Positions 723-27,059 of a DNA stretch of 45,867 nucleotides are shown here, piece after piece. Each line of letters starts with the position of its first letter. The stretch's first letter is position 1. The notes under the pieces were generated by a model. That model saw only the letters and a list, made by a program, of their open reading frames with translations. It did no database searches and was not told the origin of the DNA. This stretch comes from Octopus sinensis (Eukaryota): the NCBI RefSeq assembly GCF_006345805.1, contig NW_021834696.1, positions 1-45,867 on the forward strand, written 5' to 3'. Both the position numbers and the translations under genes were made by a program.

Positions 723-835
723 TCTTATAGTCTCTTTCATCGCTCTTTCACTATCTCCTTGTCTCTATTTCTCTCAATTTCCCTCAAGGCTTTCCGTCTG
801 GGGAGGTAAAGTAGGCGGTATATACCCCACTGAAA

Positions 836-1249
836 GGCGGCGAGCTGGCAGAAACGTTAGCACGCCGGGCGAAATGCGTAGCCGTATTTCGTCTGTCGTT
901 ACGTTCTGAGTTCAAATTCCGCCGAGGTCGACTTTGTCTTTCATCCTTTCGGGGTCGATAAATTAAGTACCAGTTACGCACTGGGGTCGATGTAATCGAC
1001 TTAATACCTATGTCTGTCCTTGTTTGTCCCCTCTGTGTTTAGCCCCTTGTGGGTAATAAAGAAATAGGTATTTCGTCTGCGTTACGTTGTGAGTTCAAAT
1101 TCCTCCGAGGTCGACATTGCCTTTCATCCTTTCTGGGTCGATAAATTAAGTACCAGTTACGCACTGGGGTCGATGTAATCGACTTAATACCTATGTCTGT
1201 CCTTGTTTGTCCCCTCTGTGTTTAGCCCCTTGTGGGTAATAAAGAAATA
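836..1249 (+). mobile_element. tRNA-derived SINE family A with tandem 184-bp body duplication
   Basis: Head GGCGGCGAGCTGGCAGAAACG, B-box-like GAGTTCAAATTCC, body units starting at 884 and 1068; 19-bp TSD GGTATATACCCCACTGAAA at 817-835 and 1250-1268. Confidence 0.9.
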
Positions 1250-2174: not shown

Positions 2175-2561
2175 TGTGGAGGCGCAATGGCCCAGTGGTT
2201 AGGGCAGCGGACTCGCGGTCGTAGGATCGCGGTTTCGATTCCCAGACCGGGCGTTGTGAGTGTTTATTGAGCAGAAAACACCTAAAAGCTCCACGAGGCT
2301 CCGGCAGGGGATGGTGGTGATCCCTGCTGTACTCTTTCACCCACCACTTTCTCTCACTCTTACTTCCTGTTTCTGTTGTACCTGTATTTCAAAGGGCCGG
2401 CCTTGCCACTCTCTGTGTCACGCTGAATATCCCCGAGAACTACGTTAAGGGTACACGTGTCTGTGGAGTGCTCAGCCACTTACACGTTAATTTCACGAGC
2501 AGGCTGTTCCGTTGATCGGATCAACCGGAACCCTCGTCGTCGTAACCGACGGAGTGCTTCC
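2175..2561 (+). mobile_element. tRNA-derived SINE family C
   Basis: Head GGAGGCGCAATGGCCCAGTGGTTAGGGCAGCGGACTCGCGG...GGTTTCGATTCCC; homologous copy at 43775-44085. Confidence 0.85.
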
Positions 2562-3468
2562 ATATATATATATATATACACACTATTGTTAAAGCTGCCA
2601 AATATTCACAAAACTGTTACTCAGAGTTTCACGTTCCCGTTCGTCGGACAGATGTGATGAAAGCTGAATTAAAATTGATTGCATATTTAATATAATGTTA
2701 AGTAATATGAATCAAATCAACGAATAAGCATTTTAATCTGATTAGGTGGAAGGTTTTTTAAACCATAACGGTGTAATTTTCGTTAGAGGTTGGGTGGTTG
2801 GGGGATGTGAAAATTAACAGTCACGCACAAATATAAATATCATGATAAAATCGAAAAAAGAAACTTGCGTGGAACGGGTGGGGGGTGTCGAGAAAATAAA
2901 TAATGAATCACCGAGTACTATTTTTTCCACCTTGTTTTGCATTTATGTATTCATCTCTGTGTGTATAAATGTGTGTTTGTGAGTAATATATATATATATA
3001 TATATATAGGCGCAGGAGTGGCTGTGTGGTAAGTAGCTTGCTTACAGATTGCTTCTGCGCATGTGCAAGTCAGTGTTGTACTTGACGCCGTCTTAAATTG
3101 AAGACTTTTGAATACTCAGCCGTAAGGTAAGAATTTTGGGGGTCTAGTGGGGACCTGTTGTATGTTTCAAATTATTTTTACAAGCAACAAGTCCTCAGTA
3201 GGCTCTAGTCTGCCGGAGGCTGAGTGAAAATATTATTCACTTAATTGTGAAAATTATTGGTTTGGTAGGCGTATCCTGCCAAACTTTTGTTTGAAAATAG
3301 TGTTGTTCCTGTTAAGGAGTACCTAGAAGAAATTTAGAATGATTTTTTAACTGTTTTACAGTTGTGTTAAATTTTGGCCGTAACGGTAAATTGAGAATTT
3401 TTGTTTGAGAGTTCTTCTTATGAATTCTAGTCGGCGTATCTCGCCAGAAAAATAAGAATAAGCCATTT

Positions 3469-3516
3469 GGATTACCTTTTGGATTACCTTTTGGATTACC
3501 TTTTGGATTACCTTTT
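3469..3516 (+). repeat. 12-bp tandem repeat (GGATTACCTTTT)x4 in the 5' UTR of E1
   Basis: Four exact units read directly. Confidence 0.95.
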
Positions 3517-3796
3517 TGGAGTATTATACAAAGGATTCCTGTCTGTGCCATTTGTGAGGTTTTTCTTTTACTTTCCCCTTCTCCTATTTTTCTTTCTTTC
3601 TAAATATTGGTTCATTCTTTTCATTACTTTAATTTCAGTTTCCTCCCCTCCTCTTTTATTTTGTTTTATTTTTATTCGATTTAATTTTTTTGGCAGACTG
3701 TCTTTTGAACTACTTTTGAACTGTTTTTTGACATGGCAGAGAAGGAACTCTGTCTCAGAGTGGGAAATTAACCCGCCTAAGCAATGGTTAAAAGAT

Positions 3797-4942
3797 ATGG
3801 AGGAGAAGACGGTGGTACTTAGAACGTATTCTCAAGTTCTTAATTCCATCACCGTCTTCCCAAAACAAGTCATAAAAAATGAACTTAAAGAACATTTGTC
3901 CTCTGTAAAATATATATCCCGTGGTGTCAAACATGCAACCGTATGGTTGCTGTTTGACAACGGGGAAAAGGCTCGCCAGTTTGCGAGTCAGCTTTTAGAA
4001 GGCAATGAAATTTTGTTTCTCCCGTCATATTGTGGAAGAAAATTCATACGAGCCTGGGTATGTGGGCTTCCCCCGGGCACCGAAGCGGATTGGATTGAAG
4101 ATACCATCCGACGGGGACTGGGGTATGGCGGGCCCAGGCTCTTAAATGTAAGGGTATTGCCGGCGGTCGATTGGGAAGGGTCAAAAGCGATTTTGACCCT
4201 GTGGACCCCATCGGCCGCAACAGAACTGGTTTTTCCAGATTTCTTGAAAATGGCTAGCTGCAGGTATCCAGTGATACTTGAGGGACGTCCCCCAAAGTGT
4301 CACTCGTGCCTGCAGCCAGGCTACATTAAAAGGAACTGCCCCCAGGACCATGGTAAGGTCCTGGAACAGTCACCAGATGCCACCTCCCCTACTCGGTCAA
4401 AGGGAGAGGTGGATGTGGTCGAGGAAGATTCAGCCTCCTCAACTCAAAAAGGATTAAAAAGGAAGAAGACGGGCAACAATAGTTGCCCGCCGAAGGAACC
4501 TAAGGCTTCGGGAGGCGGGGGAGAGTCTCCGGACAAAGCGGAAGAGCTCCACTCTCCCGAAGCCAGGAAGAAAAGAAAAAAAAGAAAGAAGAAGAACGGG
4601 TCATCTCAGCAGGGAGATGATGTGCCGACTGCATGCCCCGAAGTTGTGCCATGCACGGTGGAAGAAACCATCCCCACCCTTAAAAATGATCAATTGATTA
4701 TCTTTTTCTACAAGGGCGGGGAGGTGGAAAAAATAGTAGAAGAACATATAGAAACAGTAGATATGCCCTTCACACGGGATCCCGAATGGCGACCGCAGAT
4801 AGCTGTGGAGGTCATAATGTTTCCCTCGTGGGAAAGGCTTAAAGCGTTTGGGGAGGAGTGTCGCATATGGCCGGGTGGCCCTTACACGACTTACATGTCC
4901 TACATGAGTGAGGTATGGGGAATGGCGGGATACAGGAAATAA
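3797..4942 (+). CDS. LINE ORF1/gag-like nucleic-acid-binding protein (381 aa from ATG 3797) with zinc knuckle
   Basis: CHSCLQPGYIKRNC at 4298-4339 (CX2CX4HX4C with H>Y, CAC>TAC); basic KKRKKRKKK tract; homologous to the E2 protein (TVVLRTYS vs TVVYRTYS). The listed 3467 TTG start lies in T-rich UTR; ATG 3733 plus a frameshift is an alternative start. Confidence 0.75.
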   Translation: MEEKTVVLRTYSQVLNSITVFPKQVIKNELKEHLSSVKYISRGVKHATVWLLFDNGEKARQFASQLLEGNEILFLPSYCGRKFIRAWVCGLPPGTEADWIEDTIRRGLGYGGPRLLNVRVLPAVDWEGSKAILTLWTPSAATELVFPDFLKMASCRYPVILEGRPPKCHSCLQPGYIKRNCPQDHGKVLEQSPDATSPTRSKGEVDVVEEDSASSTQKGLKRKKTGNNSCPPKEPKASGGGGESPDKAEELHSPEARKKRKKRKKKNGSSQQGDDVPTACPEVVPCTVEETIPTLKNDQLIIFFYKGGEVEKIVEEHIETVDMPFTRDPEWRPQIAVEVIMFPSWERLKAFGEECRIWPGGPYTTYMSYMSEVWGMAGYRK

Positions 4943-6116
4943 AGCGGCATTGAAGATAATGATGAATATATCGATAGATATATCGAAGAGTAGGAGGTGA
5001 AAGACCCTCGTTACAGAGTTTGAAACCTCACCTTATTGGACTATTTTGTAGTGGTTTATAACCTCAATTTTGAAAATATGTTAAGTAAGAGGTTTTAGTG
5101 CCTCCTTCTTGTAAAAGGTTTGAAACCTTAGATTGATTTAGGAAAAAAAAAGAAGAAAATATGTTTTCGAGAAAAATCCAATCGGCGGGTGTTGGGTTTC
5201 GTCTCTCATCTATTCATTATAATTCATTTCATTCATTAATGTGTTTGTCCAGCCCGCAAAGCTCTTTGTACTGTCTATATGACAAATTTTCGAAATAAAG
5301 TAGCTTGCTCACCAACCACATGCTTCCGGGGTCATTCCCACCGCGTGGCACCTTGGGCAAATGTCTTCTACTATAGCGTCGGGCCAACCAAAGCTTTGTG
5401 AGTGGATTTGGTAGACGGAAACTGTAAGAAGCCCGTCGTATATATGTATGTATATATGTATATATATGTGTGTATGTATGTTTGTGTGTCTGTGTTTGTC
5501 CCCCCAACATCGCTTGACAGCCGATGGTCCCCATAATCTAGCGGTTCGGCAAAAGAGACCGATAGAATAAGTACTAGGCTTCCAAAGAATAAGTCCTGGG
5601 GTCGATGTGCTTGACTAAAGGCGGTGCTCCAGCATGGCCGCAGTCAAATGACTAAAACAAGTAAAAGAGTAAAAGAGTAAAGAGTATATATATGTACAAA
5701 GTGAGATAAGGGTTGTAAATGCAACCCTCCATGGGATATCATATATCCAATTTACTGCTAGTGAAGTACCCAACAAAGTTAATACATAAATGTTAAGGAT
5801 TGCGATGCAATCAATTCATTTACTGTGTTATATGGGCTAAGGTAAAATGATTTACCACAAATTACTAATACAAGATAAGAAAATGGAGAAAAACATCTAA
5901 ATCAAATATCAATTACCAGATAATACTCAATCACATACTTTATTAAACCACCACATAAGAGACTGTAGGGTTAAACATAAAAAAGTAGAACAAATCAGTG
6001 TACATAAAGGAATGTACATAAAAAAGTGTACATAAAAGAGTAATGTTGTATAATAAGTAGAATATATATAAAACAGAGAATATAAATATAAGTAAATATA
6101 AATATAAGTATAGATT

Positions 6117-6301
6117 ACATCTTACAGCTGTTTCGGCCATGTAGATAAGTATGTCTCATTTTACCAATATTAGCCTTACCAATATTAGCCTTTTATGATA
6201 TGCACTCATATGTATATGTATATCTCCGAAGAGGCCCTATGATAATTTTGTAAATGTCTCATTTATATCTATATATTGACCTACCATAAAAGGCTAATAT
6301 T
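6117..6301. other. Hammerhead-bearing element with the ribozyme split across an inversion
   Basis: + strand ATATCT-CCGAAGA-GGCC (6220-6236); - strand GGCC-GAAA-CAGCTG-TA-AGATGT (6138-6117); inverted overlap AATATTAGCCTTTTATG / CATAAAAGGCTAATATT. Confidence 0.55.
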
Positions 6302-6323
6302 GTATTTCTCTATTTTCTTATCT

Positions 6324-6406
<83 letters not shown>

Positions 6407-6440
6407 TGTCTGGTGTGTGTGTGTATATATATATATATGT

Positions 6441-6923
6441 AAATTAATAGTTATCGCCATACTAATATGGCAGTCTTATAAATATAAGACTATAACTATT
6501 AATTTCCAGTAACGCTGCCGTAATCTCCTTTAGAGAGACTTAGTAATTTTAATATTTCTATTATTGAAAACAAGTGGATGTATTCCACTGAAACTAGGTA
6601 AATAGATTCTTCGAACAGGGACAGTCAGTAGCGACACCTGCTGGGTCTGACTAAGCTGCATTGATAAAGGGCAAATACCCTGAAACATGTCTGCAGCTGT
6701 CTGACTGGCAGGATGAAGCGGCTGACCTCCCCTGTTCGAAAGTTTATAATGGACGCAGGTTGTGTGTCAACTAGCTAGCTTGAGGCGGTGGTCTCATGGA
6801 GCTAATCAGCGACAGCTTTAGTCTTATATTTATAAGACTGCCATATTTGTATGGCGATAACTATTAATTTCCAGTAACGCTGCTGTAATCTCCTTTAGAG
6901 AGACTTAGTAATTTTGATATTTT

Positions 6924-6929
<6 letters not shown>
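6441..6929 (+). mobile_element. Retrozyme-like element: 365-bp monomer, 73-bp direct repeat and 51-bp 5' inverted segment
   Basis: Direct repeat 6492-6564 / 6857-6929 (3 mismatches); inverted repeat 6441-6491 / 6820-6870 (1 mismatch); internal hammerhead; flanked by (TA)n. Confidence 0.75.
6654..6698 (+). ncRNA. Type I hammerhead ribozyme motif (U3-A8 core variant)
   Basis: AGCTGCA-TTGATAA-AGGG CAAATA CCCT-GAAA-CATG-TC-TGCAGCT: 7-bp stem I, 4-bp stem II, palindromic stem III ACATGT, GUC cleavage triplet. Confidence 0.8.
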
Positions 6930-6965
<36 letters not shown>

Positions 6966-7033
6966 CATAGATATAGTAAACTCAGTTACCACGTCAAAGT
7001 GGCGGTTGAATGTTACTGCTAGTATCAGGATTC

Positions 7034-7075
7034 CAAGACTGAATCAGTTTCGAGCTATTTGCTTATCCTCAGTCG
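7034..7075 (-). ncRNA. Minimal type I hammerhead ribozyme motif
   Basis: CGA-CTGAGGA-T AAGC AAATA GCTC-GAAA-CTGA T TCAG-TC-TTG: canonical core, near-palindromic stem III, GUC site, 3-bp stem I. Confidence 0.7.
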
Positions 7076-7155
7076 CGAGCACCGCTTTGATGTGGCCGCT
7101 GGCTTTACTGTTTATTATAGTTACTACTCTGGTCTCTTCGTAAGATTTTACAACT

Positions 7156-7235
<80 letters not shown>

Positions 7236-7343
7236 CATACATACATACATACATACATACATACATGCATACATATATATACACGCATACACACACACAT
7301 GCCAGCATGGGAAAAAAAACCTTCAAAGGTAATAATTATTATT

Positions 7344-7508
7344 AAAATTATAATTTAGGGTATCTAAGAGACACCTTAACGCTGGAAATAGCAGCCAAAA
7401 CGTGACTCTAAAAACACATTAAAGGAACATTTAATGTAGTTTTAAAGTCAAGTTTTGGCTGCTATTTCCAGCGTGGAGTTATCTCTTAAATACCCTAAAT
7501 TATAATTT

Positions 7509-7509
<1 letters not shown>
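7344..7509. mobile_element. Palindromic foldback/MITE-like element
   Basis: AAAATTATAATTTAGGGTAT...ACGCTGGAAATAGCAGCCAAAAC pairs with GTTTTGGCTGCTATTTCCAGCGT...ATACCCTAAATTATAATTTT around a short loop. Confidence 0.75.
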
Positions 7510-7541
<32 letters not shown>

Positions 7542-7571
7542 GTATATATATATGTATGTGCGTGTGTGTGT

Positions 7572-7798
7572 GTGTGTTGTGTGTGTCGTTGTGTCTGTAG
7601 TTCCCCACCGATTGACAAATGGTGTTGATGCCTTTACGTCCCCGTAACTTAGAAGTTCAACAAAAGAAACCGAGAGGATAACTCCTAGATATAAACGGAA
7701 CATAAGTACTGGGATCGATTGATTCGACTAAAATTCCTCAAGGTGTTGCCCCAGCAGGGCCGCAGTCTAATGACTGAAATAAGTTAAAGATAAAAGAT
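7572..7798 (+). mobile_element. SINE family B 3' half, diverged
   Basis: GTCCCGTAACTTAG...GGCCGCAGTCTAATGACTGAAATAAG tail. Confidence 0.75.
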
Positions 7799-9044
7799 TA
7801 AAAAAATATATAAATGTATGTACGTATTTAGTTCAAATATATATTCAATTAAACCTTTATTGTAATTGAATTTTACTTCAAATTAATACAATTTCGACAT
7901 AATTTACTCTTGTGTTTTTTTTTTATTTCTTTTATTCCTATTTCCCCGCAAAAGATTCGTTTAAATTTACACTCGATGAAATGATGACACTTGTGAGAAA
8001 AGAAAAATTTAACTGATTAGAAATCAATCTGTGATAGTTCCACCGGCATCGTTATTCATCAATCGATTCGTTCGTTAGTAAGTTGCATTACTGTGAACTT
8101 AACTAATTCGATCGCCGAGTAGCGCAATAAGCTTAAGAAAAAGGCAAATGAAATATGTCGTCCTCAGGTGACTACCTTAAACTGATTGAAAAATAAAGCT
8201 GGTACTGCATTCTTATGTTCTTCTTCATTCCGAAAGGACATAATGTTCGAGGCGTAAATTTTGCATTAGGTTCATTAAAAACTGACTACTTATGGCAAAC
8301 TCCAAACAGTATGCACATTTATTACTGGAAACCTTAAAATAAATTTTATAGGCAGCTTCTACTGTAAATTTTGAATATCCTTTCGTACACGAAATTGTTC
8401 ATTGACTTTATTCAGTATTTATTGAAAATTAAAGAGCCTTTAATGAAACCCTAGTTGGTTGGATTATTGTACGTTATTCACGGACATCATACAATCTTGT
8501 AGTGATAACAGTTCTTCAACTGGATCGCTTAAGGCCGTTATTATGGACATTTGAAAAGAAAATGAAACGCGTTAAAACGAAATTTGTAATTTCAAACCGT
8601 TGACTATCTTATAATCATTGGCTGATATTGTGTATGTTCAACAATATGTTAGAAATTATATGCAATGGCTTAACGAATATATGTAGTGTTAGGTAACGTA
8701 AGATACTGTATTAAGTTGTTGGCGTATCGAGAAAAATGCTTAGTAGCATTTAGTCCGTCTCTGCGTTCTGAATTCAAATTTTTCTTACTTTCCATTTGTC
8801 TTGCTCGCTTACGTTTCTGGTGTTTGCAAAATTTTCTAGAGAACAATTCTTAGTGGTAAGAACATAGCGGATCTTCTTCTAGCATAAGGATTTCCACATA
8901 GTGGTAATTCCCTCTTATATGTATGTAATACTATTTATTGAACCTCATGTTTTTAATATGCTAGACCACTGCTGTTAAATTGATGTTATCAAATAATATC
9001 CAATTTTTTCACCTCATTTTAAAATTTAATTATATATATATATA

Positions 9045-9111
<67 letters not shown>

Positions 9112-9440
9112 GTATGTATGTATTATGTATATATATATATGTAGTATAGTATGTATGTATGTATGTATGTATGTATTTATATATATGCATTTAAATGGAG
9201 TCTGGATAGATTCCTTCAAGGATACCAGATAAGCCACCCATAATTGGATACAACTCACCTACAAAAACTCACTACTTGAATGGACCATAAACAAAACTTG
9301 ACTTAAACAGGATTCAAATAATCCTATCAGGTGGTGCTATTAAGTTAGACGTGGCCTGGACCAATCTTTGGTCGAAACATATCTAAGTTTATCTAAGTTT
9401 ATATATGTATATATATAATATGTGTATAATTATATATATG

Positions 9441-9509
<69 letters not shown>

Positions 9510-9715
9510 TTCGGTGCGAATGGTTTTTTATACGGCGCCGGGTTTACAATCCTGTAAATAATAATGATGGTATTTTTATATAGGCTCGAAGCCTATGGTG
9601 ACCAGCGTGCAATGACGAAGGAAAATAGTCTATTAAAGGGTCATATAAGCCCTCGACAAAAAAAAGAAGGCTTTCCTACCCCCCCCCCCCCCCCCACACC
9701 ACATACATATATATA

Positions 9716-10551
9716 CAGGGTGCGTAAGATAATTGAGGATAAATTTATGTTTATAAAACGAACAGATATTATATTAACAGATAATAACTTCATTTATCAA
9801 AATATGCTATAAGAATAAAAATAAAGCTTCTCTATAATGTTATTCAATAAAGCCACCTTCGATTTCAACAACTGTTTCTATATGAGTTCTAAATCATCTA
9901 CATGCTCAAATCACATGGTCCTGGTTCATTTTGGACATTACTCTGTCTATGGCAGCTTTCAAAGAATATTTGGTGTAATGAGCGTGTTCATTGAACTCTC
10001 TCTCAACAACGCTCCACGTGTAATAGTCTAATTGATTGAAATCTGGAGAATTAGGAAACCAAATGCTGGGTGTTATGTGATCATGAAAATTTTTAGCCAT
10101 GTATTCCTGTGTTACTAGAGCCATAGGTGATAGTGCAGAGTCTTACTAAAACATATATTACCTTCCATTGCATATATTGTCTATCCAGGACTTAACAATT
10201 ATCTCCAGGACCGCAACGTGGGCGGCAGAGTTAACTCTAAGGCTTTGTGGAAAGAAGTAAGGAGGCATCACATATCCTTCGTTGCTGACAACCCCTAAAA
10301 CCATGACACTTGGAACCTCCGAAGCGTCTGCACATAACCATCTGTCATTTCTTCTGTTAACTTTTTGATCTTGGTCGACATTTTTCTCGTTTGAGAAATA
10401 CCATAATAACAGCATGCCTCTTCATTTCATGAGTAAACCGAGGGTCTGCCATTATTATTTTCTGAAACAAAGATTATATCGAGTTGCAAAACATGCAGCA
10501 ATGACCCCAAAAAGCAAAAGAGGTATGTCCTCAAATACCTTACACTCCCTA
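9716..10551 (-). mobile_element. Internally deleted maT-type (DD37D) Tc1/mariner transposon relic
   Basis: Imperfect TIRs CAGGGTGCGTAAGATAATTGAGGA vs rc TAGGGAGTGTAAGGTATTTGAGGA, TA flanks; FSNEKN, VMVLGVVSNEG, D-SALS...NSPDFNQL-D with 37 residues between the second and third D; multiple stops. Confidence 0.85.
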
Positions 10552-10983
10552 TATATATATATACATATATATATATAACGCATGTACCCCAGCATGGCGA
10601 CAGTCAAAGGACAGAAATAAGTAAAAGAATAAAAGAATAAAAAATATATATATACGTACATGTATATGCACGGAAATGCAACTAGACATATAAACGCACC
10701 TTTATATGACACGTTCGAGCAGATAATGCGTATAATTGTTCATACACAGATATAAGGTTGGACACTCATAAGAACATACATATATCTATGTGTGCAAGAA
10801 CCATGCAAATGAAACTACGTTAAATAAAAAGGTATTAATCATGTTTATCTGAGTGTAAAACTTTAATGAAAGATAAGTAAAATATGAACAAACGTAAAAT
10901 GAAATGTATATAACAAAATGAAATGGAACGTGATGAAAGTCATATATACACATATAACAAACTTATGGGCATGTGTGTGTATC

Positions 10984-11015
<32 letters not shown>

Positions 11016-11117
11016 ATATGTATACCTGTGTGTAGAAAGATAGATATAGATAAATAAATATATATTCATAAATACAGCCACACACACATGTATATGCATG
11101 CATGTAAATATATATGT

Positions 11118-11161
<44 letters not shown>

Positions 11162-11164
<3 letters not shown>

Positions 11165-11550
11165 TGGCTGTGTGATACGTAGCTTACTTACAAACCACAT
11201 GGTTCTGGGTTCAGTCCCACTGCGTGGAACCTTGGAGAAGTGTCTTCTACTATAGTCTCGGGCCGACCAAGGCCTTGTAAGTGAATTTGGTTGACGGAAA
11301 CTGAAAGAAGCCCGTCGTATATATGTATATATGCGTGTGTATATGTATGTGTGTGTGTATGTTTGTGTGTCTGTGCTTGTCCCTCCCTGGTGTGTTTATA
11401 TCCCCGTAACATAGCGGTTCGGCATAAGAGACCCTTAGAATAAGTACTAGACGTACAAAGAATAAGTCGTGGGGTCAATTTGCTCGACTAAAGGCGGTGC
11501 TCCAGTATGGTCACAGTCAAATGACTGAAGCAAGTAAAAGAGTAAAAGAG
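11162..11550 (+). mobile_element. SINE family B, near full length
   Basis: tRNA-like head, internal (TA/TG)n, (GTAAAAGA)n tail. Confidence 0.9.
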
Positions 11551-11559
11551 TATATGCTT

Positions 11560-11625
11560 ATATACAGATATATGCATCAGTGTGTATGTACGTATGTATA
11601 TGTATATATAAATGCATACACATAC

Positions 11626-11661
<36 letters not shown>

Positions 11662-12189
11662 ATACATATATATACATATGCCAATACATGCACACAAATA
11701 TATGTATGTATATATATGTATATATGTGTGTATATATATGTGTATATATATGTACACAATATATGTATATATATCTTTATGCATATATGTGTGTAAATAT
11801 ACGCATATACATATACATACGTGTATACATAAATACACTGGCATCCATGCGTGTACACATACATAGTTAATACATAGAATAGAGCTTATAATAATACTAA
11901 CAGCAATTAAAATATTTTCTTATCAGTCAGAAGAGCAGGGGCGTTATCAATTCAATTTTGTAGGCCTCACCAGACTGGTTAGATTGAAGTGTCTGATACT
12001 AATGATCTGAAAGGGGGAAAAAAATCTGTTTTGATTGGTATTATATATATATGTACACATATGTATATATACACCATGTAACCATACAGTTATATATGTA
12101 ATTATATATACAGTCAGAGACAACATTATGCATTCGCAAGTCAAATACATACACAAACACTTAAACATATATGTGTGTGCACATATGTG

Positions 12190-12246
<57 letters not shown>

Positions 12247-12260
12247 CATACATACATACA

Positions 12261-12324
<64 letters not shown>

Positions 12325-12347
12325 GATATACATATACATATATATAT

Positions 12348-12430
<83 letters not shown>

Positions 12431-12435
12431 CATAT

Positions 12436-12468
<33 letters not shown>

Positions 12469-12470
12469 TA
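11560..12470. repeat. Compound (TA)n/(TG)n/(TACA)n microsatellite field
   Basis: Low-complexity runs that give the YI/CV-rich spurious ORFs; a short unique stretch lies near 11870-12040. Confidence 0.85.
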
Positions 12471-12842
12471 CACGTGTACAGTGTTTTTCCTTTCTTTTAT
12501 ACTGGTGTCAAAATTAGATTTGACGAAAAAATATGCTAAATAATATCTGTTAGATTTGAATAATATTATTTATTATAACTAAACTATTGTGAGTCTCCAC
12601 TCAGATTCAAAATTCTTTAAACTGTTTACTAGGATTCATTATAGAAGTGTCCAAAAACTTTTCTATAGAAAATCACTCTAACTACAATTGTTGTTCCATA
12701 GACAATTTTATGTAATTTTAGATATAATCGATTAAAACTTACAGTTGTTTTGCACATTTTTATGAGTCTATACGATATACTAATAATTCCTGAGTGCTTG
12801 TCTGCTGTGATATCCGAGCATAATGCTTCTAGAAATATGACG

Positions 12843-12888
12843 TTGGACGCCTGAAGATTGCGAACAGGAAATTCCGAGTAGTGAACAA
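12843..12888 (+). ncRNA. Candidate minimal type I hammerhead
   Basis: TTGGACGC-CTGAAGA-TTG CGAA CAG-GAAA-TTC C GAG-TA-GTGAACAA: canonical core, weak stems with G-U pairs and mismatches. Confidence 0.5.
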
Positions 12889-13160
12889 TGCACTCACGAA
12901 TGCGTACAATATATATATATATGCATGTGTGTGTGCGTGTGTGTGTGTGTGTGTGTGGTGTGTGTGTGGTGTGTGTGTGTGTGTGTGTGCGTGTGTGTGC
13001 GTGTGTGTGCCTGCGCGCGCGCGCGTGTGTGTGTTTGTATGATTGTTTGAGTTTGTGTGTGTGTATATATCTATCTATCTATCTATCTACGTACAGATAG
13101 ACACATTTACATATATATACATACACACATACATATTTTTTAAATATATATATATATATG

Positions 13161-13258
<98 letters not shown>

Positions 13259-13819
13259 CATCAAGACGCTTCCAAATAGGAAAGCCCTGTGCTAGAAAGA
13301 GCTGTAGAAAACTCAAACCACCAATTAAGGATAAATTCTCGAAAGGAATGAAAATTAAAAACGTTTACCATCTCAATTATTTCCAAGACCATGGTTTCTA
13401 ACTATTTCCAGCAAAAAAATATTCACTGAGGCCAGTTTTTGTTAGTGGAAAAGCCTTTGGATTTCAAATATACACACAGCCAGATCCACATGTAAAACTA
13501 ACTGCCTGTATATCCTAACTTTTCAGACCACTGCGCAGATGCAAATTATAATTTCTTATTACCCTATTGTTATTATATATATATAATATATATATTATAT
13601 ATATATATAGTATAGAAGAATCAGTAAGTTGTCATAATAGAACCCAGAGTTTCAAATACCAGAACTAAAAGCTTCGAGGCATTTTCATCGGCTATTTAGA
13701 CAATAGTCGCTACGAAAAAAAACCCCGTTGAATAAAAGGGAAGTTACTCTAATAGGCATGAAAAAGTATAAAAGATATATAATACAAAAATATAAAAATT
13801 ATAAAAAATATAAAAAATA

Positions 13820-13920
13820 CACGTAACCACATCTCACAACCTTCTAAAGATGTCTCATCTATGTATATCATGTCCTTGTCTTTACAAGCATCTTCTATGC
13901 ACCTTATGCTGTAGATTACA
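13820..13920 (-). pseudogene. Penelope-like GIY-YIG endonuclease fragment
   Basis: IYSIRCIEDACKDKDMIYIDET; nucleotide-similar to 15241-15305. Confidence 0.7.
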
Positions 13921-13954
13921 CACACACACACACATATATATATATGCATTATAT

Positions 13955-14554
13955 TAATCAAAGGACACATTTAAGTGTCTACCTGCTAGAAATAAGAGTT
14001 AAAACCCTTATTTGGACCACCAAAATATTACACTGAAAATAACAGATTCAATAGTATATGGACGAGCGAACCGAAAAAGATCTCTCACCGTTATAGCATA
14101 AAGCTACATATTTAATGGAACATGTATATATGTGGACCGGTTTCTGGTTTGACCTTCCTCAGCACATCTTAACCCTTAGAAACATCTTTCCAGTCTGCCA
14201 CGTTGATATCTGCTGGTGTCCTTAATTGCTTAGCGCCAAAATGTGGGCAGCCTCAGTGTGAAAAATACTAATCAGCAGCAAAAATATCCAGAATGGAATA
14301 TTTGCAAGATATTTATGTTGTTATTATTATCAATATAACTCAATATAAATAGTCCAGAATAACAACAATATTGATATAGTTGGTTGCAGGCCTAAATTAG
14401 CGTTATATTGCTATAGAATAAAAAAAATATACTAATCAAGGGACACAGTGAAATGTCTACTCGCTCGAAATAATGGCTAAAACCCCTCATTTGGACCACC
14501 AAAATCTTACAGTGAAAATAACAGATATGGCAGTATACGGATAAGCGAACGGAA
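13955..14554 (-). mobile_element. Retrozyme-like element: ~478-bp monomer plus ~120-bp diverged direct repeat
   Basis: Direct repeats 13955-14075 and 14433-14554 (shared ATTTGGACCACCAAAAT...GAAAATAACAGAT); internal hammerhead. Confidence 0.7.
14130..14167 (-). ncRNA. Minimal type I hammerhead ribozyme motif
   Basis: ATGTG-CTGAGGA-A GG TCAAA CC A-GAAA-CCGG-TC-CACAT: canonical core, palindromic stem III ACCGGT, GUC site, 5-bp stem I. Confidence 0.75.
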
Positions 14555-14558
14555 TGTT

Positions 14559-17056
14559 TATGCATGTGTTGACATTTGTATGTATGTATTTATTCTGCAT
14601 AGTCCTGTGTTTCTGTGTTCATGTTTGTGTGCTTGGATGCGTGTGTGGGTTTGTGTGTTTGTATGTGTGAGTATATTTGTGTGTGTACTTCTGCCTCCTT
14701 GTGTGTCTATGTTTGAGTGTGTCTATACGTATGGGCTTGTGTGTCTATTAACGTGCGTCTGTCACATGTTGTTTCGTGTCTCAATTCGTGTCCTTGTGTG
14801 TGCGTGTCTATGGTCATGTGTTTCAGTTTTCATTTGTGTATGTATGTGTGTGTGCTTGTTTGTCTGTATTACCTATATACCTATCTATCTGTTTATCTAT
14901 CTGTTTATTTACATATCCATTTACCTACATATATATATACGTATACATAGCAGCCTACTAACAATTCTACCTGTGTATATATAAGTTGTGGGTATTGAGG
15001 TATAACTTCCTTCTACGTATATTTCCTATTTAGTACTGAGGATGTTTCATTTAAGAGAACCGACTCCTGTACTTTTCTGAGTATTGGGTCCTTCGGGTGC
15101 TTGGATAAAATGCGGATGTCAAGTTCACCCAGTGTGCCTCCATATTGGTCTTTGGCATGTTGGTAGAGTATGGAGGACTATTTTTTGTTGTTATATTGTC
15201 TCAAATCTCCATTTAGTCTCTCGGCAATGCTTCTAGATGGCTCACCTATGTATATCATTTCTTGCCTCTACAAGCACCTTCTATGCAACTTATGCTGTAA
15301 ACTACATTTCTAGTTCTACAATTAATGTCCGCGTTAATCTTACATACCATGCAGTTATTATTGGTGCATGTGGTATTCTCAAAGGAGTAGTCCTACATTG
15401 TTGTGATCTGATGGAGCTCCCTGGCTTTTCAACGATCTTAATGTTGAGTTTGACCTCTTTCAGAGCTTTCCTAACTCTTAGGGCAAGTTCTTCATGGTCT
15501 GTGGCTTCTACAAACAAAACTCCTTGATATGTGTTGGTCTTGTAACACGTGTTCACACTATTTGCTTTGTCACAAGCTCTTTGTATCCTATTCCAATCTG
15601 CAATCAGTATGTTGATTTTTATGTTGTGTGAGAATGCTGAGTTCTTGTGAACAACATATTTAGAAGCTATTGGTTTCAGGTAATAATAGCGAGGAGCTGC
15701 GCTCTGTTGTTCACAGTCTCTAACCAAAGTTCAATGTCAAGGACAGGAAGCTATTGTTAGGGTGCATAGTGGGTAATCTATAGTTACCTTGATACTTTGA
15801 TGGATCGAGTTCGCTATTTGCTGGATGCTTTCCATTATGTTCCTCTCAGTTTGTACATTATAGTTACTAGAGTTTGTCCTAACTAGAATATTTAATGTCA
15901 TCTACATACCTACAAAGCAGTTGTGGATTGTTTCGTTAAGGATTGTTTAAGTTTTCTGTCCCATGAGGTCATGAAGAGGGCAGCCACATCTCCATTCACA
16001 GCGACACCAATAGCTGCAACTTGAACCTGCATGTATACTTTCCTGTTAAACTTTACTATGTGGTTCTTCAAGGTGGTTCTTATGCTAGCCCCTATTGCAT
16101 GTGCAATCATTCTTTTCACCTGACTGTTGTTCCCAGGGTCCTGTGTGGGTATGGCCCAGCCACTCCACCGCTCCGTGGTGCTTTTCTTTACTGCCGAGGT
16201 GTTGGTGGGTGGTCTTCCCCTCTGTGATCTGATGGGGCAGAATCTACTAAGGTCATGGTTGTCTGGGTAGTTACAGTCATATGTTAGTTTAAGGAAGAGG
16301 CCCAGTTGCCCCGTGCTGACTTCGTGGAACTCTACTTCAATCTCACAGATAATCTCAATGCATTTTTCCACAGTAAAATCTGTCTTTAGATGGGTAGGGT
16401 GAAACTACATCCATACAACCCACTACACAACCTGTGAGGTCGCTGGAGTGGTTGCAACTACTGATTCTATTGAGGAGATCCTCCATTCTCAAACAGGCAT
16501 CTGGGGACATTTCAATGAGTGGTCGTAACACCTGTCAGAGGAAGTAGGACAGTCTTTAATTAGAGGGGGTATTCGCTGCGGAAACTGGCCGGGCTGGGGA
16601 TCCCATAACAGGGTTTACGTAGAGTTTATGGTTTTTACGTAACCTGTATAGTGTAGGGTGTCATGTAGACGTCTCTCTCTCCCCCTCCACCCCCTCTCTC
16701 TCTCTGTATATATATATATATGTAGGTGATTGAATTTGTAAGTAAACAGATAGATCGGTACATAGGTAATACGAACAGACAAGCACACACGCATATACAT
16801 ACAGAAATGAAAGCTGAAACACATGACCACATACACATACAAATACTTCACGCACACAAACAAGGACACATAAAAACGCACATCCATACGTAATAGATGC
16901 ACGTACATAGTCACACAGACCCATACACATAGACACACTTAAACACATGTGCACACAAAGAGACAAAGGTACACACATAAATACGCATAAACATGAATAC
17001 ACAAACACATGAATATGCAGAATACATACATACATACAACTGTACACACATGCATA
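14559..17056. repeat. Diverged inverted repeat arms (14559-14940 and 16697-17056) of cryptic TG-rich sequence
   Basis: Shared non-periodic words in opposite orientation, e.g. GGTCATGTGTTTCAG, TATTACCTAT and ATTCTGCATA. Confidence 0.7.
15010..16400 (-). mobile_element. Penelope-like retroelement relic (RT, thumb, Cys linker, GIY-YIG)
   Basis: NHIVKFNRKVYMQ...AIG..V.GDVAALFM; RYVDDI at ~15896-15913; YLKPIASKYVVH; NNCMVC...CRTRNVVYSISC...YIGE; many frameshifts and stops. Confidence 0.85.
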
Positions 17057-17068
17057 CATATATATATA

Positions 17069-17488
17069 CTCTTTTACTCTTTTACTTGTTTCAGTCATTT
17101 GACTGCGGCCATGCTGGAGCACCGCCTTTAATCGAGCAACTCGACCCCAGGACTTATTCTTTTGTAAGCCTAGTACTTATTCTATCGCTATCTTTTGCCG
17201 AACCGCTTAGTAACGGGGGCATAAGCACACCAGCATCGGTTGTCAAGCAATGCTAGGGGGACAAATACAGACACACAAATACACACAGACATATATATAT
17301 ATATATTATATATATATACATATATACGACGGGCTTCTTTCAGTTTCCGTCTACCAAATACACTTACAAGGCTTTGGTCGGCCCGAGGCTATAGTAGAAG
17401 ACACTCGCCCAAGGTGCCACGCAGTGGGAATGAACCCGGAACCATGTGGTTGGTAAACAAGCTACTTACCACACAGCCACTCCTGCGC
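17069..17488 (-). mobile_element. SINE family B, full length
   Basis: Complete head to tail on the minus strand. Confidence 0.92.
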
Positions 17489-18024
17489 ATCACACACACG
17501 CACAAACACACACATGCATATATATATGCATACACATACATGCATACACACATACATATACGCATACATAGATACATAGATACCTACATATGTGTATACA
17601 CATGCACACACACGCAAACAAACAAACAAGCAAAAAGAACGAAGCTCGGATAACGAACAGAGTCAACGTCTATTGGAAAGGTTACAAGACGCAACAAAAA
17701 TTTTAGAAAAAAAACAAATAAGTAAATGAGTGGAAATCGAACCGGTGAGTGTGTTAAATAATAAAGCAGTAAAAGAGAATGACTCTCCCCAGACACAATA
17801 AAATATGCTTCAACAAACGAATTCACATAATCTTGCAAACCAAACACATAAGCCAAATATATATATATATGTTCATTTTTATACTTTTTGAGATCTAGTT
17901 ATATGTTTTATAAAAATATATTTTATTTGTTATTTATGTTTTGGTTTATATTTATCACTGTTTGAGTTGCATAATAGTGGTTTTATCTCTAATTTATATA
18001 TTATATATATAGTATATTATATAT

Positions 18025-18059
<35 letters not shown>

Positions 18060-18180
18060 GGTATGATAGGCATATAAACATCCATAATATACATATATAT
18101 ATATAGATATATATATATATATTATATATATATATATATATATTCTATATATATATACACACAGACATATAATTATATAT

Positions 18181-18272
<92 letters not shown>

Positions 18273-18633
18273 GGTGTCTATATACTTACCATGCCACGTA
18301 CTTTGAAATTGAAAGGACTATTCAGAAATTGTGATGGACCCAAATTTTCTGATCTGATGCTTGATTTAGACAGAAATTGAACTGCGAATGTTAAGACTAA
18401 CCTAAATTTGGAAAGGTCATTTTATCTGTCACTGTACTGATTTTGTAGGACCCCTATTCTTTGTCAGTACATTATTTGTGAGAACACATAGTCAGAAGAA
18501 ATTAAATGGTGGTGTAATGTATCTTTTCTGAAAGGTTGCTAAAGAAAATTTTGAACGTTCGATCGGCGAAAATTGAACACTCAAGCGTCACCTTCGGCAG
18601 ATGAGTCCATCACACACACACACACAAACACAC

Positions 18634-18683
<50 letters not shown>

Positions 18684-18816
18684 GGTCTTTCAGTTCCATC
18701 TACCAAATCAATTCACGTGGCTTTGGTCGACTTCAGGGTATATAGTAAAAGATAAATGCCTAAGGTGTCATGCAGTGGAACTGAACACGCACAACCATGT
18801 GGTTGGGAAGTAAGCT

Positions 18817-20564
18817 CCATTATTTTATGAAATTGGCCATGAAGGCCTTACATAGAAGGGACAGCATAAGGTGGAGACAAAAGAAAACGAAACGAATGAA
18901 GGGAATGAATTTCTATCATGAAAGATAAAATGAAGCCGCTCAGCCCCAGCCCCGAGCGACTTCATTCAACCTGTTTATGCAACCTTTTTCTAAACTAGTT
19001 TATAATGCTACTTTTTCTTTTTAGCAACAGCTAATTACCATCCTTCTGAAGAATGTTTACGTTATATATTTTTTTAAATATCCTGAAAACTTACTTGTTT
19101 CTGAATTGAGCTGGTGTCCAACTTCTTGACCCACCACCTATAGTCTTGATTTACCTCGTAGTCCTTCAATTCTGACATATATTCTGGGTCTGCCACTACA
19201 CAACGAATGTACTCGGGTACCCACTTCACTCCTGATACATCCATTTTTGTAGCATTGTTCCACAAGTCTATTTTGTCATACAGTTCTTCGTTTTCTGCAT
19301 TGTACAATTTATGTTTTTTTCATGGGCGAGAGTGGGAAAATTTGGGGCTCCTGTGTGCTTGTGTTTGCCTTCATGTCAGGAGAGGCATGGAGAGGGCTGG
19401 TGTCTGTAGGGGTTGGTTTGGGTATATTTGGGTGTGGGTGGAAGTCGGGTGGGTGTTGTTTGGTAGACATCCTTCACCATATGTGTCCTCTTCCTCCTCT
19501 TCCTGCTCTTCTTCTTCACCGTTTCCCAGCTGGTATTCGATTCCTCCTCCTCGACGCTGGTGCCTATCTTCTGCCGTTCCACCGCACATACTTCTTCTTC
19601 CACAGGAAGTGTAGCATCAACCACTTCTTCCTTCTGTCTCTTCTTGTCTTTTTCTAGTGATGGAGGACATTCCGCTTTAACGTGGCCTGAAAGGCCACAT
19701 TTATAACATCGCAGAATCCTCCCTTCCACTCTGACCTTTAAATTCGTCTCTCCCACTGTGATACTTTCGACCATTTTTTCGATGTCCTCCACCGCGATAT
19801 ACACTACCATGTCAAGGGTTTGTCCCTTCTAGTTCTTATGAGGTGTTCTGGTGGCCTGTAGGACCACCACCTTCTCCTCCATTCCAAGTAGTATAGCAGC
19901 CACCAGACAGGCTTCATCCACCTCTGGGGGTATTTCCTCCACCCTAACCCTACTAGCACGTCTCCCAAGGTATACAGTTAGAAGAACTACCTCATTCGTT
20001 TTCAGCGGTGTTGCCGAGTGCAGCCTGGCGATAGCTACCTTTTCGAACTGCACCTCTATCGTTCCAACCTTTTTACCTCTGGCAGAGTACGAAATCCCTT
20101 GCCAGACTGGTCTTAATACCTTTTCTATCTGTACCGTAGACATGTTCTCAGTTTTTCCATCTGCCACCGAATACGTCCTATAAACTACCGTTCTTTCCGC
20201 TGTTTTCTTTAAGACTTCTTCGTGTGGTGGGGAGAAACACCTTCACTTCGTTCCCCCCACTTTTCAGCATTCCCTTATACTTGCTTGCATCTTCCAGCCT
20301 TAAGTCTTTGTACTTCGCTGCAGCATAACTTCTATTTTCCATAGCTTTGTCTATTTTCTTCAAATACTCTACCATTTCTTCCTCAGACGACACATAGTCC
20401 GAGGGAGGGTAGCTTTCTACGTTTGATACAGAACAACTTAAACTTTCGCAACTCCTCACTCGATACCTCTCCATTACTCAAGAGGAAAAATGTCGCACAG
20501 TAAAAAAAAAGAAAACACGTCTATCTCACATAAATACAACGAAACAAATAAACCATGGTAAACC
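18817..20564 (-). mobile_element. ORF1-only non-autonomous retroelement E2
   Basis: TSD GGAAGTAAGCT at 18806-18816 and 20565-20575; decayed ORF1 homologous to E1; 3' end AAAATAA. Confidence 0.85.
19074..20474 (-). pseudogene. Disrupted ORF1/gag-like zinc-knuckle protein of E2
   Basis: Fragments 20178-20474, 19829-20167, 19376-19810 and 19074-19307; canonical CYKCGLSGHVKAEC; TAG at 19829 aligns with W of E1 (DWEG vs N*KG); frameshifts near 20225 and 19320-19380. Confidence 0.8.
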
Positions 20565-20580
20565 GGAAGTAAGCTTCTTA

Positions 20581-20810
20581 TTTCTTTACTGCCCACAAGG
20601 GGCTACACACAGAGGGGACAAACAACGACAGACAAAACGGATTAAGTCGATTATATCGACCCTAGTGCGTAACTGGTACTTAATTTACCGGCCCCGAAAG
20701 GATGAAAAGCAAAGTCAACCTCGGTTGAATTTGAACTCAGAACGTAGCGACAGACAAAATACCGCTAAGCATTTCGCCGGGTGTGCTTACGTTTCTGCTA
20801 GTTCATCGCC
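20581..20810 (-). mobile_element. SINE family A nested in a SINE-B head
   Basis: Full head and body; flanking CTTCTTA at 20574-20580 and 20810-20816. Confidence 0.88.
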
Positions 20811-20839
20811 TTCTTACTACACAGCAGCGCCTGCACTTA

Positions 20840-20880
20840 TATATAATTATATATTATATATAATATATATATATATATAT

Positions 20881-20915
<35 letters not shown>

Positions 20916-22388: not shown

Positions 22389-22996
22389 GTGTGTGTGTGT
22401 GTGTGTGTGTGCGTGTGTGTGTCTGAAAGGCGCAGGAGTGGCTGTGTGGTAAGTAGCTTCCTTACCAACCACATAGTTCCGGGTCCAGTCCCACTGTGTG
22501 GGAGTTTGGGCAAGTGTCTTCTACTGTAGCCTCGAGTCAACCAAAGCCTTGCGAGTGGATTTGGTAGACGGAAACTGAAAGAAGCCCGTCGTATAAATGT
22601 ATGTACGTGTGTATGTTTGTGTGTCTGTGTTTGTCCCCCAAGATCGGTTGACAACCGATGCTGGTGTGTTTACGTCCCCGTAACTTAGCGGTTCGGCAAA
22701 AGTGACCGATAGAATAAGTACTAGGCTTACAAAGAATATGTTCTGGGGTCGATTTGCTCGACTAAAGGTGGTGCTCCAGCATGGCCGCAGTCAAATGACT
22801 GAAACAAGTAAAAGAGTAAAAGAGTATATATACGATGGACTTCTTTCAGTTTCCGCCTACCAAATCTACCCACAAGGCTTTTTTTCATCCTGAGGCTATA
22901 GTAGAAGACACTTGCCCAAGATGCCACGCAAGAGGACCAAACCCGGAAACATGTGGTTGGTAAGCAGGCTACTTACCACATAGCCACTCCTGCGCC
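22135..22996. mobile_element. Minus-strand SINE-B (22135-22335 and 22832-22996) with a plus-strand SINE-B (22429-22824) nested in its internal microsatellite
   Basis: Order 3' half (-), full copy (+), 5' half (-). Confidence 0.85.
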
Positions 22997-24078
22997 TATA
23001 TATATATATACCTTATAGCGGAAACCATTTAAGATTTTGTAATGAAAGAGACGTACCAAAGTTACTAGACTGTCTTCTTTATTCCTGCATAAGACCTTCA
23101 GTTGAGTTCTTGAAACAAACATTGATAAATTCATTGCGTGGGAATCGGATAAGTATTTCTAACTGATAAATTAATTCCAATTTATATCGCGACATTAGAA
23201 TGACGTCACAATCACATGACATGTCTGCAGATGCTTCAGTATTTAGAGGCTTAACGGAAAATACACGACCACACCATATCAGCTTCGAAACACTTGCTTG
23301 ACAAAGGTTCTGTTTTGAGGAAAGATTAATCTACGAATAGATGCCATTTGTTGTTATGCCAGAATATGCTTCATTATAGATTTTTTTACCAGTCTTAGAT
23401 ATAAATTTCACCAGGGTTACATAATTTTAACTGGTTTGTGTGAAATGTTTCTTGGATAAGTATAATAATTGGTAAATATAGATTTTTTTCTAATAATTTC
23501 TTAAAGGTTCGCTCATATTTCTTTCATAAGATTTTTTTTTTATTCTTCACTAACCAAAAGCGTTATGAGCAATTTAATTTTTTATTATTTTTATTTTTTT
23601 CATATTTTTGGCAGTCAAGTTTAATATCATCTGCAAATATACACTGAACGAAATCAATTAGATTACCTACACAGAGAAAACGCTGACACTAACTTGGCAA
23701 TGTTCCAAACTCTTTGTAGTCTATGACGGAAGGAAGGAAGAAACCAAACATTTTATATGAAATATGGTATTCTGTTGTCATAAACTAACATTCACACGAA
23801 GGAGAGAAAGAAAAATATTGCAATCACTCAACACCATTTCATATCTATATTTCACTCCGTACCACTGTACCAGCCATCTAAACTACGTTACATTTTAAAC
23901 ACACGCGCGGGCGCAAACACACACACACACATGCTAAGTACATTTATATATGTTCCTCTATATTGAATCAAAACAAAACCATGAGATTATTACAAAATCT
24001 TAAGTATGTTGCAACCTAAGACGTAACACATCAACACATGATATGCATAAAACGTTGTAACGCAGAAATGCATATATA

Positions 24079-26794: not shown

Positions 26795-26858
<64 letters not shown>

Positions 26859-26902
26859 ATATAATATACATATATATATATACATATATATATATATGCA
26901 TG

Positions 26903-27059
26903 GGCGTGGCTATGTGGTAATAAGCTTGCTTCCCAACCACATAGTTCCGGGTTCAGTCCCGCTACGTGGAACCTTGGGCAAGTGTCTTCTACTATAGCCT
27001 CGGGCGACCGGAGCCATGTGAGTGGATTTGATAGACGGAAACTGAAAGAAGCCAGTCGT
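26903..27059 (+). mobile_element. SINE family B 5' half
   Basis: Head with GCTTGCTTCCCAACCAC, uninterrupted at the E1/E2 insertion site. Confidence 0.85.

Follow-up and report, generated by a model that had tools for sequence, protein, structure and literature searches.

The question raised by this locus, a stretch of 45,867 bp from Octopus sinensis (contig NW_021834696.1; hereafter the window), is why two highly divergent retroelements, named E1 and E2, are inserted at the same nucleotide in the heads of two copies of one short interspersed element (SINE), here called SINE-B. Research on site-specific retroelements treats them as natural systems of safe-harbour integration and as models for the long-term coexistence of transposons and their hosts. 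Their known targets are ribosomal RNA, small nuclear RNA and transfer RNA (tRNA) genes, spliced-leader exons, microsatellites, telomeres and a few DNA transposons and long terminal repeat (LTR) transposons. An earlier note on this DNA had proposed an apparent targeting of the SINE, and a family that targets the SINE is also the best reading of the present data, in which three copies have the same 5′ junction. E1 and E2 probably represent a diverse cephalopod family of non-LTR-type retroposons of about 1.7-2.3 kb which carry a single open reading frame (ORF) of the ORF1 type and insert site-specifically into a SINE head.

E1 occupies positions 3046 to 5297 on the plus strand (2252 bp) and consists of a 5′ untranslated region (5′-UTR, 3046-3796), an ORF of 381 amino acids from the methionine codon at 3797 to the stop codon at 4942, and a 3′-UTR (4943-5297) that ends in TTTTCGAAATA and has no poly(A). 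Upstream of E1 lies the 5′ part of a SINE-B head (3009-3045, plus strand) with the motif TGGCTGTGTGG, and the last 15 nt of this part (3031-3045, AAGTAGCTTGCTTAC) are the upstream copy of a target site duplication (TSD), the downstream copy of which (5298-5312, plus strand, AAGTAGCTTGCTCAC) is identical at 14 of the 15 positions. The remainder of the host SINE-B follows on the plus strand from 5313 to approximately 5690 and starts with the B-box-like CAACCACATGCTTCCGGGGTCATTCCC. When the flanks of E1 are joined, a continuous SINE-B head is obtained (GGCGCAGGAGTGGCTGTGTGGTAAGTAGCTTGCTTAC directly followed by CAACCACATG), which matches the seven uninterrupted heads of the window, and with the empty site thus restored the position and the 15-bp duplication given for E1 in the earlier note proved to be exact. 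The 5′-UTR contains a perfect tandem repeat of TTTGGATTACCT (12 bp, 4.2 units, 3466-3516), which was not found in the aligned part of the 5′-UTR of the relative from O. sinensis accession CM016886.1 described below. E1 is slightly damaged, since a 2-nt difference puts the ancestral ATG at 3733, the start codon in that relative, out of frame.

E2 lies on the minus strand at 18817 to 20564 (1748 bp), ends in CATAAAATAATGG and likewise has no poly(A). It is flanked by two copies of AGCTTACTTCC, the upstream one at 20565-20575 and the downstream one at 18806-18816 (both minus strand), so that the duplication, earlier put at 11 bp or more, is exactly 11 bp long, with the coordinates of the element unchanged. 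The body of the host SINE-B starts with CAACCACATGG at 18805 and extends on the minus strand to 18618, where it is cut off at a (CA)n tract; as it is 67-77% identical to other SINE-B copies, it is an old copy. The ORF of E2 is broken into four frame pieces (20474-20178, 20206-19829, 19825-19376 and 19316-19074), of which the third holds a zf-CCHC domain and the fourth corresponds to the C-terminal domain. Directly upstream of the 5′ repeat of E2 the sequence is not SINE-B; it is the tail (GGGCAGTAAAGAAATA) of an unrelated SINE, SINE-A (20577-20812, minus strand), itself a nested insertion distinct from that of E2. The start of the SINE-B head, 22 nt in length (GCAGGCGCTGCTGTGTAGTAAG) and adjoined upstream by (TA)n, was found past SINE-A at 20813-20834 (minus strand), and the idea that the E2 host has no SINE-B head was rejected; joining the flanks of E2 yields a normal head, the start of which lies beyond SINE-A. 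The 3′ junction of SINE-A is within 1 nt of the 5′ edge of the E2 duplication. That SINE-A targets the same site was also considered and rejected, the remaining SINE-A copies of the window being located outside SINE-B, and the proximity of the two edges is either a coincidence or a re-use of a nick.

Both elements are inserted in the orientation of the SINE, and in both the 5′ junction, i.e. the top-strand break, lies between GCTT(A/C)C and CAACCACATGG (CAACCAC), at positions 37 and 38 of the head; the junctions together with the restored heads confirm that it is identical in the two hosts. In a word-indexed protein search the E1 protein had a single match, an O. sinensis protein encoded on CM016886.1, and this sole database homologue led to a third copy, which shares 71% identity with E1 across the ORF and has no synteny with the window. 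Its 5′ junction, with GGCTGTGTGGTAAGTAGCTTGCTTCC before and TGTGCATGCG after the break, coincides to the nucleotide with that of E1 and E2 in a SINE-B head, and the orientation relative to the SINE also agrees. The copy had not been chosen for its flank, and a SINE flank in further copies is what the targeting hypothesis had foreseen. On the element side it has 12 extra 5′ nt compared with E1, which is the kind of difference that separate target-primed events should produce. Towards the 3′ end the copy breaks off at about position 6975 of the retrieved locus (L001), and no duplication is readable. According to a working criterion (Kojima), an element is regarded as target-specific if more than 20% of its copies share one flank; here, in a small sample, all three insertions with readable flanks (n=3) share site and orientation.

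The abundance of SINE-B is very unlikely to account for these hits. SINE-B, an element of about 430 bp, makes up 10.8% of the window, yet with about 9 sites of this kind and orientation in 2 x 45867 positions a random insertion would hit the site with a probability of about 1e-4 per event. Besides the E1 and E2 hosts, a pattern scan of the window revealed no further interrupted SINE-B heads. The two insertions are also unlikely to be products of a segmental duplication. As described previously, E1 and E2 have patchy protein similarity without a DNA alignment: tblastx gives short collinear matches only, with 31-55% identity, and the coding DNA is 55.7% identical, compared with 52-57% in shuffled controls. 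In addition, the TSDs differ in length and the two host SINE bodies are 76% identical to each other. The data support two insertions that occurred independently of each other, each in the orientation of the SINE, at a single nucleotide of its head. The TSDs of 15 and 11 bp, the absence of LTRs and terminal inverted repeats (TIRs) and the 5′ ends differing by 12 nt are hallmarks of target-primed reverse transcription.

The SINE-B head has the consensus GGCGCAGGAGTGGCTGTGTGGTAAGTAGCTTGCTTACCAACCACATGGTTCCGGGTTCAGTCCC. Its motif TGGCTGTGTGG is presumably A-box-like, with a match of 10/11 to TRGCNNAGTGG, and GGTTCAGTCCC is taken to be B-box-like, both judged by eye against the box consensus sequences. 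The two motifs start 43 nt apart, which by eye corresponds to tRNA-like spacing. The earlier note had described a tRNA head with a Gly-like anticodon. The position of the junction, between bases 2 and 3 of the anticodon-equivalent TT-ACC-AA, agrees with that description as judged from the A/B box spacing alone; the tRNA identity itself was not recovered, with 0 tRNA genes reported by ARAGORN and no tRNA match in Rfam at the gathering score, nor at E<=10 on an intact SINE-B head. The head is thus not recognisable as a tRNA with an assignable anticodon. An ancestral tRNA-gene target nevertheless seems plausible, because genes for tRNA-Pro, tRNA-Arg and tRNA-Glu are known to serve as specific targets of NeSL-type long interspersed elements (LINEs; PMC4640811). 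The heads also contain a hairpin-forming partial palindrome, GGTAAG-N7-CTTACC (GGTAAGTAGCTTGCTTACC; e.g. 40138-40161), and the insertion point of the E elements is at the 3′ foot of this hairpin. In the SINE-B copy at 40140 both arms are changed and the pairing is kept (GGTAAATAGCTTATTTACC).

Some further observations concern the SINEs of the window. SINE-B copies very often have a (TA)n or (TG)n microsatellite directly at their 5′ side; such dinucleotide tracts precede SINE-B at 3000-3008, 20835-20900, 22997-23005, 24070-24078 and 26850-26905, and as (TG)n at 11150-11159 and 17491-17500. SINE-B or its LINE partner may target, or seed, dinucleotide repeats. An inverted SINE-B pair (22429-22826, plus strand, and 22826-22996, minus strand) abuts at 22826, the minus-strand copy being cut at about SINE position 181. 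Partial SINE-A units occur in head-to-tail arrays at 834-1249 (plus strand, about 1.8 units) and at 30314-30805 (minus strand, about 3 units), with AAAGAAATA joined to GGTATTTCGTC at the array junction; an internal segment of the SINE has therefore been tandemly amplified.

The protein encoded by the E elements was analysed with sequence- and structure-based methods. In the E1 ORF, two RRM-like domains precede a CCHC knuckle (CHSCLQPGYIKRNC); a linker that is basic and disordered then leads to a C-terminal domain, and E2 has the same architecture. The one domain found with Pfam was zf-CCHC, in E2 and in related proteins of up to 861 amino acids, and in a sequence search of the PDB the knuckle alone was matched, to nucleocapsid knuckles. 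An AlphaFold model based on an alignment of 46 sequences has a pLDDT (predicted local distance difference test) above 90 at residues 10-180 and comprises two beta-alpha-beta-beta-alpha-beta domains there, for which the best Foldseek matches in the PDB were tandem-RRM proteins (PSPC1/NONO/SFPQ, hnRNP A1 UP1 and IMP3 RRM12). The C-terminal domain of about 80 amino acids has no Pfam match and was modelled with low confidence; it contains a motif, LK..F..D(V/I), common to E1, E2 and the complete relatives from O. bimaculoides, O. sinensis and Argonauta. The ratio of nonsynonymous to synonymous substitution rates (dN/dS) between E1 and the CM016886.1 copy is 0.23, and 0.16 for the RRMs and the knuckle, and the protein was therefore under purifying selection during the divergence of the lineages. 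The RRM-like domains together with the zf-CCHC domain are features of a type I LINE ORF1 protein, and type I ORF1, with an RRM directly upstream of the CCHC knuckle, is found in the I, Jockey, R1, Tad1, L1/Tx1, L2 and CR1 clades (PMC4120745, PMC5203782).

Neither LTRs nor TIRs nor poly(A) were found in E1 and E2, and each has one ORF1-type ORF. Among their ORFs, inspected also with Pfam, no second ORF and no reverse transcriptase or endonuclease was detected, and apart from the E1 ORF no ORF of the window exceeds 164 amino acids. One of these smaller ORFs (33043-33465, plus strand, 140 amino acids) is rich in Cys and His (HICYTMCYSG, HVSDCYFCMTN) and resembles a fragment of a transposon protein. 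The earlier note had drawn on LINEs of the Tx1 clade as precedents; for E1 and E2 themselves no place in this clade can be claimed, since membership in Tx1 is defined by the phylogeny of the reverse transcriptase, and the two elements have neither a reverse transcriptase to be placed in it nor an APE-type endonuclease. We conclude that they are ORF1-only non-autonomous retroposons analogous to HAL1 and not LINEs. As in HAL1, an ORF1 under selection (dN/dS as given above) is not accompanied by an ORF2, and two divergent families have the same single-ORF layout.

In order to determine the extent of the family, a profile search of 1.84 billion representative proteins was performed, which returned 588 relatives, 115 of them at E<=1e-10. 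Twenty relatives were looked up, and all named sources among them were O. bimaculoides, O. vulgaris, O. sinensis and Argonauta hians; the E family has many members in both Octopus and Argonauta. Pfam detected neither a reverse transcriptase nor an endonuclease domain in the ten longest relatives (up to 1041 amino acids). Complete ORF1-only proteins are present in O. bimaculoides (P0012 and P0048), and the short-read contigs that carry several of the relatives measure 1.7-1.93 kb, approximately the size of the element itself, as is expected if the unit ends in a high-copy SINE. The frameshift-joined E2 protein had no match in the word-indexed protein search, and for the 46-sequence profile this search was dominated by low-complexity candidates and returned solely the O. 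sinensis protein already found with E1. When all 156 fetched family proteins were compared with the window and the O. sinensis locus, just E1, E2 and the CM016886.1 copy were found. Two additional matches were discarded as belonging to another repeat that is embedded in the gene model P0045. This repeat has two copies in the window (2217-2515 and 43799-44088, both minus strand). Their translation corresponds to residues 194-263 of P0045, so that this chimeric model, which also contains an LDL-receptor class A domain, has absorbed transposon fragments, among them a piece of an E-family ORF1 at its C-terminus. Two metagenome scans with the vertebrate-like distant relatives P0124 and P0155, in which a neighbouring ORF2 was sought, gave nothing.

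The proposed course of an insertion is as follows. An element would insert in one orientation into the presumably tRNA-derived head of an abundant octopus SINE, with the top strand broken between GCTT(A/C)C and CAACCACATGG and the bottom strand nicked 11-15 nt upstream, and the staggered nicks would give rise to the 11-15 bp duplications. Target-primed reverse transcription fits because of the staggered nicks, the lack of terminal repeats and the fixed breakpoint combined with variable 5′ ends. As the elements encode no reverse transcriptase or endonuclease, both enzymes would be supplied in trans. Their likeliest source would be an autonomous sequence-specific LINE, from which the specificity presumably also comes, while packaging of the RNA is probably a task of the ORF1 protein that the elements encode themselves. 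The type I ORF1 argues for a partner of the APE type and does not identify its clade. Each insertion would part the A-box-like and B-box-like motifs of the SINE by about 2 kb, so that the hit copy is probably inactivated and the element would have landed in dispensable multicopy DNA. That Tx1-type LINEs target other transposons, a point made in the earlier note, is established: families of this clade insert at defined sites of such elements, and their non-autonomous partners use the same site (Tx1-Mar, SINEU; PMC4494074). Recently active LINE families of octopus genomes include L1-Tx1, Dong-R4, CR1, RTE and R2 (PMC13282606), and HAL1 is a precedent for ORF1-only derivatives (PMC5753468).

Several points weigh against site-specific insertion by an ORF1-only family. 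Just three insertions could be examined, one of them, the CM016886.1 copy, without a 3′ junction, and the bottom-strand nick, and with it the 3′ junction at which reverse transcription would be primed, differs by 4 nt between E1 (15 nt upstream) and E2 (11 nt upstream). All three copies are damaged, E1 by an N-terminal frameshift, E2 by at least three frame breaks and the CM016886.1 copy by a premature stop and the truncation. An autonomous partner was found neither in the window nor in 20.8 kb of O. sinensis sequence, and the ORF1-only form as the full-length form relies on two copies of the same layout, on complete predicted proteins and on short contigs. These last points bear on an alternative in which the targeting is real and the short form incidental, E1 and E2 being independent internal-deletion derivatives of full-length SINE-head-specific LINEs with ORF1 and ORF2. 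Deletions are frequent in LINE copies, HAL1-type elements have arisen repeatedly from L1 (PMC5753468) and L1-Tx1 families were recently active in octopus (PMC13282606). It is difficult to reconcile with this origin that two families with about 30% protein identity have one layout (a 5′-UTR, an ORF with the C-terminal domain and a 3′-UTR of 260-355 bp), that the ORF was under purifying selection, that O. bimaculoides has complete proteins of the ORF1-only kind (P0012, P0048), that 0/10 of the longest relatives have a reverse transcriptase or endonuclease domain, and that related ORFs lie on contigs of 1.7-1.93 kb, and we regard it as unlikely.

The remaining alternatives dispense with repeated targeting. 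A single ancient insertion into a SINE-B master, followed by copying of the SINE and element as a composite through retrotransposition or segmental duplication, would account for the upstream SINE head beginning at or near the first base of the SINE in each case. Against such a composite, the TSD lengths differ (15 and 11 bp), as do the element 5′ ends (the CM016886.1 copy having 12 nt more than E1), the loci are non-syntenic, and the DNA of E1 and E2 cannot be aligned while the SINE flanks are 76% identical. Furthermore, an RNA polymerase III transcript starting in the head would meet runs of four or more T, 34 in E1 or 8 in E2, the first within about 60 nt, which altogether makes the composite highly improbable. 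The other alternative is chance or a generic hot spot, with SINE-B as an abundant sequence (10.8% of the window) or its head as a fragile one. In its favour, the site is at the 3′ edge of the hairpin-forming GGTAAG-N7-CTTACC and the unrelated SINE-A is nested 11-12 nt away in the head that hosts E2. One protein family, however, was found at the same phosphodiester bond and in the same orientation three times, at about 1e-4 per event, while the seven other heads of the window are uninterrupted and the remaining SINE-A copies lie outside SINE-B, so that a hot spot or chance is barely credible.

Within site-specific insertion by an ORF1-only family, a more far-reaching version can be formulated. 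The E family might be an old, self-sustaining, protein-coding 'hyperparasite' lineage which never carried a reverse transcriptase and which, in at least Octopus and Argonauta, kept one target nucleotide while its ORF1 diverged to about 30% identity, either co-evolving with a dedicated site-specific LINE or with its own RRM/knuckle protein or RNA helping to select the hairpin target. We put this forward tentatively, as a possibility that is less likely than not. Since ORF1 proteins evolve fast, the protein identity of about 30% between the E1 and E2 families is no clock for the age of the target specificity. Should the elements' own protein or RNA help to select the target, non-LTR elements would have a way of targeting that has not been described for them.

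The closest known systems include Tx1 LINEs that insert into other transposons. Tx1L inserts into Tx1D, Tx1-Mar into Mariner-N4_AMi and Tx1-9_AMi into Harbinger, with SINEU as a partner (PMC4494074). Like these, the E family recurs at a defined position and orientation of another multicopy transposon and has an ORF1 of the RRM/CCHC kind; unlike them, its target is a SINE head, a kind of target that the articles surveyed do not list, its members are without a reverse transcriptase or APE endonuclease, and its non-autonomous element is protein-coding and not a SINE. With HAL1 (PMC5753468) the E elements have in common an ORF1 protein only, no ORF2, propagating families of their own and a presumed ORF2 protein of a partner acting in trans. 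HAL1 has a type II ORF1 (coiled coil, RRM, C-terminal domain), a poly(A) tail and no sequence-specific target; in the octopus elements, two RRMs in tandem precede a CCHC knuckle, the C-terminal domain is of another kind, poly(A) is absent and the target nucleotide is fixed. A fixed position in a tRNA or tRNA-like multicopy 'safe harbour' is shared with NeSL elements (NeSL-1_TV in tRNA-Pro, LIN15_SM in tRNA-Arg, LIN25_SM in tRNA-Glu; PMC4640811) and with Dada DNA transposons (PMC3706591). These target real tRNA genes with their own restriction-like endonuclease and reverse transcriptase or DDE transposase, in contrast to the decayed SINE head and the missing enzyme of the E family, and the duplications of 11-15 bp differ from the short, fixed ones of Dada. 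As regards the protein, type I LINE ORF1 (classification of Khazina and Weichenrieder; PMC4120745, PMC5203782) also has RRMs immediately upstream of the CCHC knuckle, two of them in the Jockey/CR1/L2 subgroups, and differs from the E protein, in which a single knuckle is succeeded by an extended basic linker and then by the C-terminal domain of about 80 amino acids, with no ORF2 downstream. That non-LTR elements target other transposons and that ORF1-only derivatives exist is already known; a literature survey that covered articles, with Repbase outside its scope, yielded no report of a SINE-head target, nor of any ORF1-only family that inserts at one fixed nucleotide.

Targeting of one nucleotide in a SINE head would add a new class to the targets of site-specific retroelements. 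A selected ORF1 without enzymes would mean that the HAL1 strategy has arisen independently a second time, here for the first time together with target specificity, and it raises the question of what an ORF1 protein contributes when reverse transcriptase and endonuclease come from another element. SINEs make up about 12% of octopus genomes, a SINE expansion that squids and Nautilus lack, and the E family would therefore have very many neutral landing sites. Because each hit splits the promoter of the SINE, the E family may restrain the very SINE in which it inserts.

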